From contig JAIVFI010000001.1 in the NCBI GenBank assembly GCA_025558095.1, forward strand, positions 1,302,001 through 1,366,000: a stretch of 64,000 nt of DNA, in the 5' to 3' direction. Under the pieces are notes generated by a model that saw nothing but the letters and a program-made list of their open reading frames with translations, did not search any database and had not been told where the DNA came from. Shown here in pieces: positions 1,668 to 10,511 of the stretch (position 1 is its first letter; the number at the start of each line of letters is the position of its first letter). The position numbers and the translations under genes are program-made. The stretch is from Hyaloraphidium curvatum SAG 235-1. Its lineage: Eukaryota > Fungi > Monoblepharomycota.

Positions 1668-2148
1668 TCAGGATTCGGTCAACGCCTTCAGCTTTGCGTC
1701 GTCGGCACAGTCAGGAACGTCCACAAGCCGCGCAATCTCCCCTTGCTGTTCCGTTCGTGAGGACAAGGAGCGAATGCTCATGACGAAGCAACCCACTGCT
1801 CCCCACTTGATCAGAGTCGGTACCGCGGTTCCTTTTACTTCCGCCAAATGCCTGTAGTAGTTGCCGGGGTCCTTCCAGGTCGGCTTGTCGCCTCCGTCAA
1901 GCAGCAGCAAGGTCGCGTCGGGAGACAGCGCTGCCCGGATCGTAGGCTCCGACCGTCGGCAGTCCGGGCACCACTGTCGATCGTGAGACGCACATGCAAT
2001 GTGCAGTGGTCCGAAGACCGCGTACCGATGCCCCGTTCGCGTCCCGGTGGCCGTGAAGGTAGACAAATACGGGGCCGGATTCGGCGAGCGAGGCGACGAG
2101 CGGCAGGAACCGCTCCCGCTCGGCGTAGGGGAGAAGGACGTCCGGCAT
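1668..2148 (-). CDS. TXNDC17: Thioredoxin domain-containing protein 17 (TRP14)-like, probably 3 exons
   Basis: MPDVLLPY..VFVYLHGHRDANGAS | WCPDC..WKDPGNYYR..AVPTLIKW | ..ALTES*. The WCPDC active site and VPTL motif are typical of TRP14. Confidence 0.85.
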
Positions 2149-2319
2149 CGCTCGGAAAGGAGGGATGAAATGCGTTTTCCCACTCAAGTGGACGGTCAAT
2201 TTGGCTCCCGGAGTTCGGAATGTCACCCACAGACACGATCACTCCTCCACCTCTGACGAGATCGGACGCCAATTCGATGACATCAGGGATCGTAAGCTAA
2301 GATTCGTGCTATGGTAAAA

Positions 2320-3567
2320 TTAACCAGATGCTGCTGCTGCGGTACCGTTCTTCAGAACGGAATCGCTTAACCACTTTTTCACCTGGGCGACAAAGATCTT
2401 TCGCGCCGCCAACGGATTCTTGTTTCCACACTGCCACTTGATGCTAGCCAGATGGATGTTCCCTACCTGCAGCCGAGGAACGTCGTCCAAGTGTCCAAAC
2501 TGGCATTTGACCACGTGCTGAACGCCAGCTGCCGTCGCGAATGCGATGGCCTGGTTCAAGTCTGCTCGCTGATCAAATGGTCGATCAAGAGCAATCTTGT
2601 ACTTGACGTCTCCGACCGCGACGCATTTCGTTTGATGCTTGAAGACGAGGTCTGGATTGAACCCGTACTCTTTGCCGCGGCTGTCCTTAACCATCGTGCG
2701 TGACTTCGATACGCTTATGCCCAGATGCGACCACAATGTCTTCCTCAGAATGGCGCGAAGTCCGTCCTCAGCAATCGCTGCGGAAGGCAGAAGGAAGCAC
2801 CAGCTGATCGTGTCTCCGAACTCAGCGGATCGTGAGATGGAGTCAAGAATGTGACAAGCAAATGTCCAAGCGGTTTCATAATGGGCCATCCGGCGGCTCG
2901 GTGGAACGTCCCTGTCTCCAGGCTGAAGATCTCCGACGCCGTCGAACTTTTTCAGTAACCCTTGCGCGTCAGAAGCATAGACTCGTGTCCGCGGTCCGCG
3001 AAGTTCCGCGACGACTTCCAGCGCCGCTCGCAAAACCCTGTTCACAGCAGTGTTTGGGGACTGCACATCCGCTGTGACTTTTGGCTCCAAAACGCCTTCA
3101 TAAAATCTTCTAGCAACGTGCATGGGATCTAGAGCGCCGTTCCACGTTTCCCCGACGACTTCGGCATCTCGGTAGTCACGGAAAAGAGGAGAGTATAGAA
3201 GAAGCTCCAGTTCGTCCAGAAACCATCTCAAGATGAGTTCCACGAGGCCGCAGGCTGGCGCGGCCTTGAGTTCGGTAGGCTCGAAGCTGGGTACGAACTT
3301 GGCCACGCCGGCGAGGTACAGAAGATGGTTCAGAGGAATCTTCGAGCTAATGACTATGGTCCGTTCGCCTGCACCGATGAGACCGACCACGTTCATCGCG
3401 CTGAGCTGCCATTTGCCATTGTCCAGGCGTTCGATGTTGACACGGCGGTCCTCCTTGAAAGTCGTTGCCCTCTGGAGGCCATCGACCATCGCCTTGAGCG
3501 CCAGACCCTCAAATTCGTCAATATCAATCTCGAAAGGCCGCCCATCGTCCTGGAAAGGGCGTTTCAT
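2320..3567 (-). CDS. mcrC: McrC-family PD-(D/E)xK nuclease (type IV restriction McrBC subunit), intronless
   Basis: 415-aa ORF. N-terminal NVVGLI..IVISSKIPLNHLLYL and NTAVNRVLRAAL segments; C-terminal NPDLVF...VGDVKYK...ADLNQAIAFA catalytic motifs of McrC. Adjacent to an McrB GTPase gene. Confidence 0.85.
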   Translation of the reverse strand: MKRPFQDDGRPFEIDIDEFEGLALKAMVDGLQRATTFKEDRRVNIERLDNGKWQLSAMNVVGLIGAGERTIVISSKIPLNHLLYLAGVAKFVPSFEPTELKAAPACGLVELILRWFLDELELLLYSPLFRDYRDAEVVGETWNGALDPMHVARRFYEGVLEPKVTADVQSPNTAVNRVLRAALEVVAELRGPRTRVYASDAQGLLKKFDGVGDLQPGDRDVPPSRRMAHYETAWTFACHILDSISRSAEFGDTISWCFLLPSAAIAEDGLRAILRKTLWSHLGISVSKSRTMVKDSRGKEYGFNPDLVFKHQTKCVAVGDVKYKIALDRPFDQRADLNQAIAFATAAGVQHVVKCQFGHLDDVPRLQVGNIHLASIKWQCGNKNPLAARKIFVAQVKKWLSDSVLKNGTAAAASG

Positions 3568-3796
3568 TTGTCCAGGGGTACGCTACTGCGGGCTGCCACG
3601 GTCCCGCGCGCGCAGCGTGGCGCCGGCGTGCACATACATGTACATCACCACGCGCCTGCCATACTCCGTCTTGGGTTGATGCGTTGACGTCGAACAACGC
3701 GGCAGCTTGTTCGTTTCAGCACCCGTGTTTTATTCGCCCGCGAACGGTCGCCGGAACGCGCATCGAACGACAACCAGTTTTGCGTCTCCCTTGGGA

Positions 3797-4766
3797 ATGG
3801 AGCCATTGCCGGGTAGTGACGGCGCATCAGAGTCCTCTCTTAAACGATCAGTGGATCGCAGTGGCACTACTGATGAGCCGCGGAAGATCCAGCGGACGAA
3901 CGGACCAGGCGGCGCTGCGGTCAAGGAGGACCAAGGACAGCCCCCTGTCCCCGCTGTTCCCGGCAGAAACTGGAGGGGTTTCCCTATAACTTTTGATGGG
4001 CTACTGTCAATCGTGGCCTCGGATCTGTCGGACGAAGTTGTGGACGATATCATCAATGGCGAACCGTTCAAGAGGAAGGACATTGATCAAGTCCGGCTTT
4101 TGAGGGTGTCGAAAAGTGCTGTTAAGGATGCTTATCATCGCGTGTTTCACGACATGTCTTACTTCACCCTTGAGCGCGAAATCGAAAGCAATTGCTTTGC
4201 GTTCCTGGCCCAAGAAGCTCAATTATTCCATCTCCACATGTGGGGCCGTGGAGGGCTGAGAAGCCAAGGATGGGCACGCTTACTGCATCTCTTCAAAGGT
4301 GAAGGCCTGGATGTAGTATGGCACAGGAAGCTCCCAGGCCCAGACAAGCTCATCATCGAGTACATTCAAGTTGCTGTTTCCCAATCACATTGCCTTCGCA
4401 TGACTAGCAGACCATGTTCTAGACAATCACATTGCCTTCGCATGACTAGCAGACCATGTTCTAGACAAAGCAAAGCTCTCTGGTCTTTTTCTTGTAGATT
4501 TGAATTTGGGGATGCTCGATGAGGAGGTTCTTGCTTCCAGTCTGTCTAAGTTACCTCAGTTGCAGCAACTGTCCTTGAAAGGCAATCACTTCAAGAATGG
4601 GATGCTGCCATTCTATGCTCCAATTGGTGGAATGAAACACTTGACCTACCTGGGACTCCCTAGCTCATGGGAGGAGGACAGTGATAAGCTTATTGGATTA
4701 CTGAATGAATTGAAACAACTGGAATTCATTGTCACTCCTATCTTGAATGCTTTGTCGGCCAGGTAA
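3797..4766 (+). CDS. Putative N-terminal region of the McrB gene: NLS-like, F-box-like and LRR-like segments, either spliced or disrupted
   Basis: ATG at 3797. KR-x11-RKIQR (3842-3895); F-box-like SDLSDEVVDDII..LLRVSK..AYHRVF; LRR-like LSKLPQLQQLSLKGNHF / MKHLTYLGLP / LKQLEFI (4500-4763) in the same frame as McrB. Contains a frame break and a TAA at 4764. Confidence 0.5.
4382..4465 (+). repeat. Exact 42-bp tandem duplication
   Basis: caatcacattgccttcgcatgactagcagaccatgttctaga at 4382-4423 and again at 4424-4465. Confidence 0.95.
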
Positions 4767-4817
4767 TTTTTTCAATGTGTACTCGATGCATCGCCTGCGT
4801 TAGCCAACCTTTCTACC

Positions 4818-6065
4818 ATGTACCTTGCAACACCTTCCTTGGAAATGCCAGCAGAGTCATTTTATGGGTCAAAGCTCGAGGACATGAAGCAACGATGGCC
4901 CGAGCTGTACTTTTCAGGTTACAACAGTGCCATCAAGCATCTGAACGAACCAGTTAAGGTGCTGAATGAGACTTCAGTACTGGACACGCAAGATCCAGCA
5001 GTAACCAGTTCAAATGAGCTAGACATGGGCTTGTATGAACGCCAGGATCAGCATCAGCTGCTTGCAAACCTGGCAAATGTTCGGGTGGACAAGTTCAAGG
5101 CATGCATTGACATCCTGTGCAGCTCGCGACCAAACTTACTCCTCAGTGGACCACCTGGGACAAGCAAAACGTTTCTGGCAGAGAAGCTGACCGAACACTT
5201 CTTTCGAAGTTCGGAAGAGCGGAAGCAGCGGGTGACATTCGTGCAATTCCATCCCTCGTACACCTATGAGCAGTTTGTCGAAGGCTTATACCCGCAACTC
5301 GTGGATGATAAAGTGAAATTCGATGTTCGTCCCGGGAAGCTAAGGCTTGCTGCGGAGTGCGCGAGAGTGAACGCAGCTGAGCGGCCAGGTGCCATCCTCG
5401 TTATTGACGAGCTCAACCGTGGAAACGTTGCTAAGATCTTTGGTGAACTCTTGTACCTCATCGAATACCGTGACAAGGAGATCATGCTCCAGCATTCCGA
5501 CCACTCTAAGGATTCGGAGCGCTCCAAGGACCCTCCGAACTCCTTTTTCTCGATCCCCAGCAATCTGGCGATCATTGCGACCATGAACACGGCCGATCGC
5601 AGCATCCAGTCGCTCGATGCAGCAATGCGGCGGCGGTTCAACGTCGTGGAGCTTCCTCCGGACGCGGACGTGCTCGAGAGTTTCTATGGAGACCGAGCGA
5701 ATCTCTTGCGTGGTGCGGAACTGGTGGCGCTGATTCGTGGATTCAATCAGCTTAACGAACAACTGAGGACCGATCTATCGGAAGATCAGCAGTTCGGCCA
5801 CGCGAATTTTCTCCCGCACCCAAAGTCGGACGTAAAGGGGAAAGGGCGAGAGGGAACGTCCGACTATGAGCAGTTCGGTCCCCAGCAACTTCAGCGTCGT
5901 TGGAAAGAGATCATCTACCCGCAACTCCGCGAGTACTTCCACGGCAATCGAAACAAGAGCAAGCTTGATTCCTACACTTTTTCTAGCTTTTGGGGAAGGA
6001 GCAAATGGGTCGAGGGATGGACAGAGCCAAAGACAAAGCAGGGCTCTGGTCGTCGACAAACTTGA
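4818..6065 (+). CDS. mcrB: McrB-family AAA+ GTPase (type IV restriction McrBC motor subunit)
   Basis: Walker A LLLSGPPGTSKT, FVQFHPSYTYEQFVEG, Walker B LVIDELNRGNVAKIFGEL, the McrB NxxD signature MNTADRS, DAAMRRRF, QFGHANFL and W..IIYPQLREYF. Confidence 0.93.
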   Translation: MYLATPSLEMPAESFYGSKLEDMKQRWPELYFSGYNSAIKHLNEPVKVLNETSVLDTQDPAVTSSNELDMGLYERQDQHQLLANLANVRVDKFKACIDILCSSRPNLLLSGPPGTSKTFLAEKLTEHFFRSSEERKQRVTFVQFHPSYTYEQFVEGLYPQLVDDKVKFDVRPGKLRLAAECARVNAAERPGAILVIDELNRGNVAKIFGELLYLIEYRDKEIMLQHSDHSKDSERSKDPPNSFFSIPSNLAIIATMNTADRSIQSLDAAMRRRFNVVELPPDADVLESFYGDRANLLRGAELVALIRGFNQLNEQLRTDLSEDQQFGHANFLPHPKSDVKGKGREGTSDYEQFGPQQLQRRWKEIIYPQLREYFHGNRNKSKLDSYTFSSFWGRSKWVEGWTEPKTKQGSGRRQT

Positions 6066-6138: not shown

Positions 6139-9100
6139 CTAATCGGCGAGCTCGTCCCAAGCCCCGTCGCCGGCGCCCGAATGTCCGTGGAGATCGTGGT
6201 CGTCGCCCAGCACGACAAACTCGTCCAGCTCCATCCCCGCGGTCGGCAGTTCCAAGTGGGATCCGGGAGCCTGCATCAAGTGTCCGTCGTGCACCGCAGG
6301 CCCGCCGTGCGGACTGAACTGGCCGCTCGGGAAAAGCAGGTCGTCGTAGGTCTGCATCCGGGGCGGCGTCGTCGACATGGAAACCGAGCCCGACGCGACA
6401 CCGCCCGCCGGAGTCGTTTCTTTGGGCGGCTGCGCTGCCTTTGGCGACGAGACTCGCGAGATCGGGTCCGAGCCGCCGGCATCCGGAAGGTCCTCCGCCG
6501 ACGCCGAAGCCGTCGTTCTCCGCCGCCGCCTGCCTCCGCCCTCCTCGTACGAAACGACGGGGTCCAGCTTCTCCATCTCCTGCATCTTCTTGAAGCGATC
6601 GGCGTACTCGGGCGGCAGGTCGACGTCCTCGATCCCGCCGTCCAGGTCCTCCTCCTCGACGTCACGGAGCAGATCGTCGTCGTCGTCGTCCTCCTCGGCG
6701 GCCGCATCCCCGGGCTCAAAACCGCGGTCGCCACCGCCCTGCACATCCGGTTCCGACGGTTCGCTCGCCGCCTCCCCAGCGTCCGCCAGCCCCACCTGGG
6801 CCAGGCCTTCCTGATACTCGCCGTCGTCGCTCTCGTCTTCTTCCTCTTCGGCGAGACCCGCGGGTGCGGCTTCCTCCTTCATGCTCCGCATAGCGTCGTC
6901 CGCGGCCGCTCTCCGCCTCCGTCCGGGCACCACGCCGGCGTCCTCGCCGGCGTCCTGAAGCAGATCCGCGAGCTCGTCTTCAGAAACAGCGAGCGGCTCC
7001 TCCTCTCGCACGGGCGGCGGCTGGGGCGCGTGCGGGAACGACGCCTCGGACCGCGCGCTCCCCTTCTCGCTCGCCGCTTCCTCCGCCGCGCTCGCCGTAC
7101 CGGGAGGCATGAAGGAGCCCGCGGGCCGCGCTACGCGGCCCGGTGCCCACCGGGAAAAGCTTTTTTTCACCTGCACCTTGGCCATGTTCTCGAACTCGAG
7201 CTCCCAGCCGGGCCGCACGCCGAGGCCGGCGGCCTGGTGGAAGACAAAGTTGAGCAGGTCCACGCGGAAGAGGGAAAAAACGTATTCCGAGGTCACGTCC
7301 TCCTCGCCCGCCGAGATGACGGCGCCGTTGGCGGGCGAGGCGCGGACCTTGCTTCCGGCAGGGTTGGAGTGCGCGAGGACGACCCGCGAATGCTATGCGA
7401 TTGCTCGGCGTCAGCCAAATGGAGCAGCGAGACGAGATTGGGCTACCAACGTCGTAGTACCACTGCTCCTTGCCGTAGATCGCGGCGGGCGGGTTCGAGT
7501 CGCCCATGGCAAGCGCGACACCAGCAACACGTCCTTCAATGGCTGGAAAATGAACGCCGAGAGGTTGAAAAGCCTGAATGGAGTGATCGAAGAGTGCTAC
7601 TCACGTCGCTGGTTGATCAGGTTGACAACGCTCGTGCACGTGTTCCCAACTCCAATGAGCACGGCCGGATGGAGCAAATCCCCGTTCGGCCTGATCCACT
7701 CGACGTCAGAACAGCTCGCCGCGCGGCAGGAGATGTCAATCAACTCACTCGATCAGCTCGTCCCAAATCCCGCCCAGCAGTTCGTCCAGCAGCTGCATCC
7801 TGTCCAGCCTCTCCAGCCCGGACCGCTTCATCTCGTCCATGTCCGCCTCGACGACAAACACCAGCACGTCCTCCGGGTCCACGTGCGTCGTCAGCGCCTT
7901 GAGGAAGCTCACGGTCGGGTCCAGCAGGTGCGAAGACCCCCGCTCCAGCACGTTCTCGTACGGGTCCAGGACGGCGCGCACCGAGGGCGACTCGTGCACG
8001 AAGATGATGGGGTGCCGGCGCGCACGCGGCTGTTCCCAGCGCTGCCCGCCCGCGCGGGGGAGCGAGGCGACGTCGCCAAAGACGTGGATGTCGCCGTGGA
8101 AGCGGTTCCGGATGTGCGGCGAGAGCGAGGACTCGTCCCAGCGGAAGTGGACGAAGCCGAGGGCCGTCGTGAGGAGCATGTGCCGGTAGACCGAAAGAAC
8201 TTCTGCAGAGATCGCAAGAAACGAATCAGAATCAACGATTGGGTGGCAGACGGCCGAGAAAACCAACCCTGCATGCTCCACGCGGCCGCCTTGTAGACGG
8301 TGCGGTCCCTCTTGTTCCTGTCCACGCGCATGTGGTGCCTGGGCAGCATGCTCTCCCAGTAACGGCTCTGGATCCTCACGACCTGCTCCACCACCTCGTA
8401 CGCCTTGCGGCACGGCACGCCGACGCGCCCGTAGTCGAACGACGGCACGGGGTCGCCCAGGAGCACGCTCGTTACCGCCGCCATGGACAGCGACACGCTC
8501 CGCGCGTTGTACCCGCCCTCGAGCGCCACCACGACCCGCCCGCCAGCAAGGGAAGACAGCATGTAGGTCATGTGCGCGTAGCCGAACGGCGTCACCCGGC
8601 ACCCGCCCAGCGGGTCGTCCATGGCCGCGTCGAAGCCGGCCGAGATGATGACGAGCTCGGGGTTGTACTCGGTGGCGATGGGCATGACCACGCGCTGGAA
8701 GGCGTGGATGTAGTCCGCGTCGCCGAGGCCGCCGCCGCCCTCCCAGGGCACGTTGACGTTGAACCCCGTGCCGGGGCCCTCGCCGATGGCGTTGGCGGCC
8801 GCGTCGTTCGAGTTGGGGTAGAACTGCATGTTGTCGTATCGGTGGATGGAGATGTAGAGCACCGCGGGGTCGTTGAAGAAGGCGTTCTGGGTGCCGTTGC
8901 CGTGGTGCACGTCCCAGTCCAGGATCAGGATCCGGCGCAGGCCGTGCTTGGCCTTGAGCACGTTGGCGGCCACCGCGACGTTGTTGAAGACGCAGAAGCC
9001 CATGGGCTCGTGGGCCTCGGCGTGGTGGCCGGGCGGGCGGACCACGCAGACGCCGTTGTGCAACTCGCCGCGGGCCACGCGCGAGCACATCTCGATCACG

Positions 9101-10211
9101 CTGCCGCACGACAGCATCGCCGAGGCGTACGACTCGTGGTTGACGTAGAGCGAGTTGAACGCGTTGCCAAAGTTGCGGAGCTCGTACGAGCTCATTTCTG
9201 GACCGCCGAAAAGTCAGCTGATCTGCAGTCCATGAGGCCAAGAAAACGCCTACCGGTGGTCCGCACGATGTGCGCAATCATTTCTTCGGTGTGGAACAGC
9301 CTCAGCTCGTCCAGCGTCGCGTTCCTGCACTTGACGCGCGAGCACCGGTCCGCCAGCCCCTCGCGCCGCAGGGTCTCCCACACCTTGCGCAACCGCTCCG
9401 GGTTCTCGGGGTGCGTGTCGTGCTCCTCGTCCAGGATCCGGTGCGCAAGCATCCGCGCGTCGTAGGCCAGGCCGGTGATCCGCGGCGGACGCCCCGGCGG
9501 GGCGATGACGTACGGCGTGGCGTACGTGCGCGCCGGGCGCGGCGGCGAGGCCGGCAGCGGCATCGGCGGCGAGGCCTCGCGCCGACGGGGCACCACGGGC
9601 GGATAAAACGGGTACATCCGCGGATCGTACTCGTCCTGGTCGGAGCGCGAGTCGACCGAGACAGCCCGGGGCGAGCGGCGCACCTCGGGCGAGCGCCGCG
9701 ACACCGGGATCGCGGGCAGCGGCGGCGTGGGGCCGGCCGACGGCGGCTGCACCGAGAGCGACGGCCCGCCGATCGTGTAGGACGACGGCCGGCGCGCCGA
9801 AAAGGCGCCGGGGTCGAGCTCCATCTCCTCCTCGAAGGCGGCCGCGTCCAGGCCGCCGTACGCGCCCGAGCCGACGTAGGCCGTCGACCCCCCGAAATTC
9901 GCAGAGGCATTGAATCCGCCCAGTGATCCGTGCGAGTTGTGCGAGTTATGTGCCGGGAGGGCGCCCGGGAACGCGAACGCGTCGCCGAAGAAGCCGTCGG
10001 AGGCGTCGCCGCCGTCCTCGCCGTGCAGCAGCAGGCTGTCCATGCGCGGGTTCTGGTGCAGCGGCAGCGACGCGCCGGGCGGCAGGTCCGACGGCGGCGT
10101 GTGCGCGCGCGCCGGGTGCGCGTGGCGCGGCCCGCGCCGCGTCGGCGACGGCAGCGGCTCCGTCAGCGGGTCGGCGTCCGAGTCGGACTCGACCTCGAAG
10201 ACGCGCGACAT
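6139..10211 (-). CDS. Class II histone deacetylase (Hda1/Clr3-like) with Arb2-like domain and acidic low-complexity tail; multi-exon
   Basis: HPENPERL, RPPGHHAE..MGFCVFNNVA, ILDWDVHHGNGTQ, ISAGFDAA.DDPLG and LEGGY motifs. The downstream minus-strand exons (8206-7745, ~7400-6139) are inferred to belong to the same gene. Confidence 0.9.
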
Positions 10212-10511
10212 GGCGGCGCCCGGGCGGCCCCGGTGCGCAAGGGCGGTTGGCACCGAAATGGGAGGACGAGGGACTTCGCCCAGACCGCCAACCCAACCCA
10301 GATGCAGCTGGAATCCACGCCCATCCGTCCACTCTATGGCCTAAAGAAAGCCACTAAAACTCAGTCAGAGCACTCGGTTCGATGAACCCGGGGTCCATCA
10401 CCCCGTAGCGGCACCACGACCAGGTACCGATCCGAAGCCCGTCTCACGACGCTCACAGTCAGCAGACCCATCTAGTTCCCCAATACATGTCAAAAGGCAG
10501 GTCCCCACCCC

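Follow-up and report, generated by a model that had tools for sequence, protein, structure and literature searches.

A head-to-head McrB/McrC gene pair with leucine-rich repeat-coding sequence in the fungus Hyaloraphidium curvatum

McrBC is a prokaryotic restriction system in which an AAA+ motor, McrB, works with a nuclease subunit, McrC; the systems of Escherichia coli K-12 and Thermococcus gammatolerans are the closest described ones (PMC7680126). In the solved McrBC systems, McrC alone does not bind DNA stably. McrBC has been described as having no eukaryotic homologues (PMC7680126; bioRxiv 10.64898/2026.08.31.748284). Homologues of McrB are known in eukaryotes, but no McrC has been reported with them, and for this reason the largest census of McrBC systems left eukaryotes out (PMC11090510), which bears out what an earlier note on the present DNA had said. 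Here we describe an McrB/McrC gene pair of Hyaloraphidium curvatum SAG 235-1, a fungus of the Monoblepharidomycetes. The window, that is, the whole stretch analysed, comprises 64,000 nucleotides (JAIVFI010000001.1, positions 1,302,001 to 1,366,000) and lies on a contig of 1.6 Mb (C1) in an assembly of 31.9 Mb and 55 contigs. The core of the pair is McrBC, whereas the host, the gene layout, and McrB's N-terminal domain are new. By analogy with known systems, we favor, with a probability of roughly 0.55, the reading that such pairs form a DNase driven by nucleoside triphosphates (NTPs) and gated by leucine-rich repeats (LRRs), serving defence or cell suicide.

Judged from sequence and modelled fold, the product of the nuclease gene is a true McrC. 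It matches PF10117 in a Pfam search (E 2e-21), and PADLOC and NCBIfam searches returned no McrC match. An AlphaFold model from a 149-row alignment has a predicted local distance difference test (pLDDT) score of 90. The top structural matches of the model are McrC of T. gammatolerans and E. coli (E 3e-14 and 1e-13, template modelling scores 0.61-0.65), and its fold matches include 6ut7_G and 6ut6_G. The McrC-like nuclease proposed in the earlier note, a 415-aa open reading frame (ORF), is thus matched by profile and structure alike. All residues of the PD-(D/E)xK triad are kept (D306/D320/K322). In the profile alignment, R225 of the finger domain corresponds to R263 of T. gammatolerans McrC, the residue that stimulates hydrolysis by McrB (PMC7680126) and whose E. 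coli counterpart is K157; R225 is nearly invariant in one McrC alignment and invariant in another. The intact ORF of the partner gene encodes, on sequence criteria, a true McrB motor, with matches to AAA_5 (E 3e-20), NF008457 (E 5e-30), and McrB in the PDB (E 4e-31). The four GTPase motifs listed earlier, GPPGTSKT, FHPSY, IDELNR, and MNTADRS, are all present, and the motor keeps Walker A with the following aromatic residue, Walker B, and the arginine fingers. The serine in Walker A recurs in a second H. curvatum copy on contig C10 and in one prokaryotic-type McrB. A NACHT/NB-ARC NTPase of the STAND (signal transduction ATPases with numerous domains) class was not found in this protein: the best matches were AAA_5/McrB, and nSTAND3 stayed below the cut-off.

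Compared with the E. coli and T. gammatolerans systems (PMC7680126), the fungal pair shares the AAA+ motor with MNxxDRS, Walker A/B, and arginine fingers, the finger and PD-(D/E)xK domains of McrC with a GTPase-stimulating basic residue, and the adjacency and joint inheritance of the two genes. It differs in having a eukaryotic host, a head-to-head arrangement instead of an operon, LRRs and a basic leader in place of a modified-DNA reader, an intron in one copy, and a broken N-terminal part in the window copy. The two window genes lie on opposite strands with their start codons 229 nt apart. They are therefore side by side, as the earlier note had it, but not in the same direction, and a co-directional operon is ruled out. 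Among the prokaryotic loci, 77 of 78 McrC ORFs shared the strand of the matched gene.

The H. curvatum genome contains three McrC genes, each accompanied by an McrB. The C10 pair consists of an intact LRR-McrB gene (LRR_6, LRR_4, LRR_1) head-to-head with McrC at a distance of 138 nt. In NCBI, this McrB has an identical entry, KAI9026169.1. Its gene has a predicted GT-AG intron of 56 nt, containing a branch-like site, which would connect a basic first exon in frame to the main exon and give 846 aa. Between the C1 and C10 pairs, dS is about 3, that is, saturated, and dN is 0.29 and 0.56. The resulting dN/dS of at most about 0.1-0.2 is a long-term signal and is silent on present constraint; saturated synonymous sites with low dN indicate an old duplication followed by long purifying selection. 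The same head-to-head layout recurs in two to four eukaryote-like contigs beyond H. curvatum. Two of them, L014 (SRR23967301) and L016 (SRR26194948), both with an intact LRR-McrB, probably derive from fungi: they carry P450, F-box, ankyrin-RING, and intron-bearing genes whose H. curvatum relatives are 42-55% identical, and the L016 pair has F-box and ankyrin-RING genes around it, with introns of the spliceosomal type. The other two, L015 and L026, are short contigs with members of the LRR clade and a divergent gene upstream. The spacer between start codons measures 126-164 nt in related pairs and 80 nt in L026. Only host genes flank the pairs in the window, on C10, and on L014 and L016, with no linked third, DNA-binding gene. 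Pattern scans of metagenomes and genomes yielded bacterial McrC only, or nothing.

Phylogenetic trees (LG+G4, no mixture; 75 and 47 rows, picked from the best matches; McrC bootstrap not fully settled) were calculated for both proteins. Six eukaryotic McrC sequences form one clade (support 100/95) whose sister is the prokaryotic P0141 (100/99), and the four eukaryotic McrB domains likewise group in a single clade (98/91), the sister of which is P0020-26 (100/99). Both sisters come from one bacterial operon, so that McrB and McrC appear to have been transferred together, as a pair, with the readers lost afterwards; McrC of locus L113 is 84% identical to P0141. This operon, seen at L017, L027, L031, and L113, contains a DUF4011 helicase or HNH gene, an SRA/EVE-McrB1, an McrB2, and McrC. 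It is the nearest relative of both fungal proteins, matching at about 50-56% over the McrB domain and about 34% over McrC, but unlike the fungal pair it is co-directional with overlapping stops and starts and has two McrB genes with DNA-reader N-termini. It originates from freshwater metagenomes. One copy was binned in a metagenome-assembled genome of Pirellula sp.; it consists of one contig of 3.5 kb and is thus a weak pointer to the donor phylum. The horizontal acquisition and co-transfer put forward earlier are supported by these sequence comparisons. Domestication is supported as well, by the diverged paralogous pair with its low dN/dS and by the predicted spliceosomal intron of the C10 copy.

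The third H. curvatum pair, on contig C5, represents a separate transfer on phylogenetic grounds: a single origin of this pair and the LRR clade is rejected (approximately unbiased test, p 6e-9). It consists of an ankyrin-McrB of 870 aa (L012 3690-6302, minus strand) and an McrC (L010 3906-5600, plus strand), 18 kb apart and convergent. The ankyrin-McrB has a bipartite basic patch before the motor, and GC content at third codon positions is host-like. The motor shares about 50% identity with McrB of the Lysobacter/Luteimonas type, and ankyrins occur in 0 of its 120 best matches. Two unannotated ORFs lie directly downstream of the ankyrin-McrB (L012 2214-3011 and 3078-3671, minus strand), the 265-aa one without a Pfam match. 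A marine pair is probably a third transfer. Here (L030 1-4431, JGI 3300009436; and ENA ERZ23498428), a GC-rich contig of eukaryote-like appearance bears an ankyrin-McrB-McrB tandem-motor gene and McrC in head-to-head orientation. This pair has long branches in the trees, and the test rejects a shared origin only weakly (p 0.02). Such independent ankyrin-McrB fusions accompanied by McrC show that repeat domains have been grafted repeatedly.

The McrB gene of the window starts at ATG 3797, and the 415-aa motor ORF is only its 3' part. Its 5' part, which codes for the LRRs, is disrupted: it has a frameshift near 4370-4400, TGA at 4401 and 4443, and TAA at 4764. When this LRR stretch is read with X at the breaks, its alignment with the L014 McrB, in the LRR region of the latter (E 0.001), continues across the TAA, which identifies the stop as a nonsense change rather than an intron. 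Of the complete pair that had been claimed, McrC and the GTPase ORF are thus intact, while the McrB gene is not. Modified-DNA readers occur only in the bacterial sister operon, and eukaryotic members have LRRs at that place; profile searches found no EVE, SRA, YTH, or McrB-N domain in any of them. Searches of the H. curvatum genome found no host paralogue of the LRR part. Atlas neighbours of the 5' ORF are F-box/LRR proteins at a similarity of only 0.78-0.80, Pfam gave no F-box match in the McrB N-terminus, and a species-specific F-box hidden Markov model scored 1.8 bits there, the negative control giving 1.0 and the positive control 17.3. Basic patches resembling a nuclear localisation signal (NLS) are present in the leaders of all four eukaryotic LRR-clade McrB proteins and suggest localisation in the nucleus. 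In L016, internal duplications of 82 nt and 46 nt (10047-10402) double the NLS-like patch of the leader.

LRR-coding DNA is also unusual in composition. The observed/expected (o/e) ratio of CpG is 0.35 in the window (4200-5120) and 0.42 on C10 (L007 5420-6800), and both segments are TpG-rich. All six lowest-CpG windows among 429, covering about 190 kb of the H. curvatum genome, lie within the two LRR-McrB genes, whereas McrC and the 3' motor parts are normal and the median of 30 host F-box genes is 1.1. The genome encodes several C5 methyltransferases, and TGA 4401 fits a change from CGA to TGA. The CpG loss looks like a scar of 5mCG (methylated CpG) deamination confined to the sensor, and targeted 5mCG methylation of the LRR-coding DNA is possible. 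Two long, apparently intronless C5 methyltransferase matches (PF00145) lie 25 kb apart on C12 (523184-524251 and 548189-549250), in addition to split matches of the eukaryote type.

Several other systems invite comparison. McrB-family AAA proteins of animals (Iyer 2004, as cited in PMC11090510) are likewise McrB-family motors in eukaryotes, but they are highly divergent and have no reported McrC. The fungal McrB, in contrast, nest among bacterial McrB and keep the nuclease. We take the animal proteins to be those named UNC-53/neuron navigator and CTTNBP2-type, one of them presumably fused to ankyrin repeats. Nucleotide-binding LRR (NLR) and STAND proteins are sensor-NTPase-effector systems, and plant NLR pairs can be head-to-head. 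The fungal pairs resemble them, by analogy and not by membership, in having a repeat sensor on an oligomerising NTPase, an effector, and a divergent gene pair; however, the NTPase is McrB AAA+, the repeats are N-terminal, and the effector is the separate McrC subunit. The window GTPase ORF resembles E. coli McrBs, which has no DNA-binding domain (PMC6344862, its reference 59), in that it would give a headless McrB that could in principle oligomerise and bind McrC; the short fungal form would arise from 5' mutations and not from an internal start of an intact gene. CoCoNuT systems (PMC11090510) are also a McrBC branch with altered N-terminal domains, but the fungal MNTADRS is canonical and the McrC nuclease triad is intact, and none of the CoCoNuT features (coiled-coil, YTH/CSD, HEPN or helicase partner) was found in any eukaryotic locus. 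From the three-gene McrBC systems LlaI and BsuMI, the fungal pairs differ in having no linked DNA-binding subunit.

These comparisons suggest the following course. A bacterial McrBC motor-nuclease would have entered an ancestor of the fungus once, as a pair, and been domesticated. The operon would have turned into two head-to-head genes driven by one shared promoter, and the modified-DNA readers of McrB, of the SRA/EVE type in the bacterial sister, would have been exchanged for a basic NLS-like leader and ribonuclease inhibitor (RI)-type LRRs. As in E. coli and T. gammatolerans, McrB would form a hexamer onto which McrC docks, stimulating hydrolysis via R225 and cutting DNA. Since the reader has been lost, something else must provide the targeting, and the LRRs are the sole candidate in cis. 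They may bind a ligand, proteinaceous or not, from an invader (a DNA virus, endoparasite, or bacterium), or restrain the motor until a ligand is bound. In an NLR-like manner, the activated complex would then cut foreign DNA or, as a suicide defence, the genome of the cell itself. C10 carries the intact form, and the window copy, its working LRR lost, may yield at most a headless McrB motor still in use, or may be starting to decay. Repeated grafting of LRRs or ankyrins, fixed divergent pairing, rapidly changing repeats, and the turnover of copies are in line with such a sensor-gated nuclease, and giant viruses infect zoosporic fungi (PMC13533422). More tentatively, microbial eukaryotes may have made McrBC into a repeat-gated immune nuclease repeatedly, at least twice in this fungus and probably again in a marine lineage, with LRRs or ankyrins on the AAA+ motor detecting the invader and licensing a co-expressed McrC, and with CpG methylation of sensor-coding DNA speeding its change.

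A number of observations weigh against the defence reading. The proposed role is built on sequence comparison and analogy, with activity, ligand, and induction all conjectural. The LRR region of the window copy is broken, LRR regions of relatives are alike only at 23-35% and in short stretches, and a single-sequence AlphaFold prediction of the C10 LRR region failed (pLDDT 38). L015 and L026 are without eukaryotic markers as well as short. Sequence does not reveal the preference for GTP, which is set by the N-linker. RNA evidence consists of contigs only, with no strand and no silent control. No relative was found in viral contigs, which also speaks against a viral origin of the pair. A search of the H. 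curvatum genome for capsids of nucleocytoplasmic large DNA viruses gave no match, and its control was silent too, so that the search is uninformative.

Whether the locus is what it seems was judged from assembled contigs of two sequencing runs, X1 and X2, both of which may be from the sequenced strain; X1 is taken by guess to be RNA. The island had been described as lower in GC, and its values of 0.46-0.56, against 0.655 for the window, are indeed the lowest 1-kb values of the 64 kb. This composition, the intronless catalytic ORFs, and best matches in bacteria could point to a contaminant or chimeric assembly. However, the island lies within a 1.6-Mb contig, and both junctions, which the earlier note had asked to be confirmed, are bridged: one X1 contig runs continuously from the spliced TXNDC17 gene through McrC to 4411, a second from 4439 into the histone deacetylase (HDAC) gene, and the left junction is covered by an X2 contig as well. 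Together with the diverged paralogous pair, the eukaryote-only clades in both trees, and a head-to-head layout and LRR fusion that are not seen in bacteria, this leads us to reject contamination or chimerism, whose chance is as good as nil. The X1 contigs also confirm the 42-bp duplication, and no letter differs from the assembly across the break sites. Long, atypical introns covering the breaks might still leave the McrB gene intact, as GT-AG pairs of 120-200 nt formally restore the frame and the C10 copy has a predicted intron. We hold this highly unlikely: the candidates have no branch point, whereas host introns at the locus are 51-56 nt with clear ones; X1 contigs splice both TXNDC17 introns and leave the break sites unspliced; and LRR homology crosses the TAA. 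Short canonical introns fare no better, as none keeps the frame and a 41-nt GT-AG at 4763-4803 shifts it. A real LRR-McrBC family of which the window copy is an early pseudogene, with motor and McrC intact by luck, is doubtful but has an appreciable chance. Two to three disabling changes lie within about 1 kb, C10 holds an intact paralogue, and the CpG loss limited to the LRR part implies a raised local mutation rate, for which reason this part would have broken first. Every catalytic residue is kept, however, and under a uniform rate the probability of no break in the 2.5 kb of McrC and GTPase would be about 0.0007 for three events or about 0.007 for two, although the rate is not uniform. The region is also well covered in X1. 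A 57-nt contig at the repeat joint has a depth of 433, a local value, and such depth on the 5' part of McrB, in a run with spliced host introns, suggests transcription.

Other functions can be imagined for an intact pair. It might be a selfish or self/non-self element, with poison and control genes acting in spore killing, incompatibility, or addiction and kept by drive. Tight linkage at loci with different neighbours (C1, C10, L014, L016), the fast-evolving repeat domain, birth and decay of copies, and patchy occurrence would suit it, but the genome has only two copies of the clade, both very old, and beyond chance matches no terminal repeats, target-site duplications, or transposase were found at the locus, which makes a selfish element unlikely. 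Classical type IV restriction, in which the LRRs or a reader in trans would direct cutting of foreign DNA with 5-methylcytosine (5mC), 5-hydroxymethylcytosine (5hmC), or N6-methyladenine (6mA), has in its favor a canonical motor and nuclease and the separate DNA-binding subunit of LlaI and BsuMI (bioRxiv 10.64898/2026.08.31.748284). It is rather improbable because the reader is gone from all eukaryotic members and no third gene is linked; moreover, in a host with several C5 methyltransferase genes and signs of CpG methylation, a 5mC cutter would endanger its own DNA. The earlier description of a system cleaving modified DNA thus finds no support, the reader having been replaced by LRRs that are themselves disrupted in the window. 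Finally, the pair might do housekeeping work in the metabolism of nuclear DNA (repair, recombination, or programmed DNA removal), like repurposed animal McrB-family AAA proteins. Such a role agrees with the apparently constitutive coverage in RNA contigs and the NLS-like leaders, yet it is very improbable, since the patchy distribution, the gains that occurred repeatedly and independently, the decay of copies, and the highly divergent repeats are better explained by conflict genes.

The literature searched, which did not extend to subscription journals, contained no description of McrBC from fungi, protists, or any other eukaryote. The present findings show complete McrBC pairs kept in fungal genomes and, on more than one occasion, refitted with repeats of the immune type and set head-to-head. 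A restriction enzyme thereby joins the short list of bacterial defence systems taken up by eukaryotes, as a candidate DNA-level defence in zoosporic fungi, known hosts of giant viruses. Natural McrBC motors retargeted by a protein-binding domain also bear on nuclease engineering. The coordinates of the window features are given in Table 1.

Table 1. Features of the McrBC locus and its flanks (positions in the window)
Feature	Position	Strand	Remarks
McrC nuclease gene	2320..3567	-	415 aa, intronless
Spacer between start codons, 229 nt	3568..3796		putative shared bidirectional promoter
McrB gene, 5' ORF, 241 aa as written	3797..4522	+	acidic/basic disordered leader, then first repeat-like part
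Perfect 42-bp tandem duplication	4382..4465		in-frame TGA in each copy (4401, 4443), LRR frame
LRR-coding segment, same frame as GTPase ORF	4446..4763	+	weak Pfam LRR_8 match, E 0.012
In-frame TAA within LRR region	4764..4766	+	homology to L014 McrB crosses the stop uninterrupted
Intact McrB linker and AAA+ GTPase ORF, 415 aa	4818..6065	+	profile and PDB matches
CpG-depleted, TpG-rich segment	4200..5120		CpG o/e 0.35; spans LRR and linker
Host TXNDC17-like gene (PF06110), outside the system	1668..2183	-	introns 1746-1796 and 1974-2025 spliced in RNA contigs
Host histone deacetylase gene (PF00850), 3' exons, outside the system	6139..9195	-	Pfam

Both flanking genes are as they had been named earlier, with Pfam matches for each and, for TXNDC17, introns spliced in X1. 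On the strand that it shares with the TXNDC17-like gene, McrC ends about 140-170 nt upstream of that gene (window 2183-2320), and with the two genes so close together, read-through or a shared transcript is possible.

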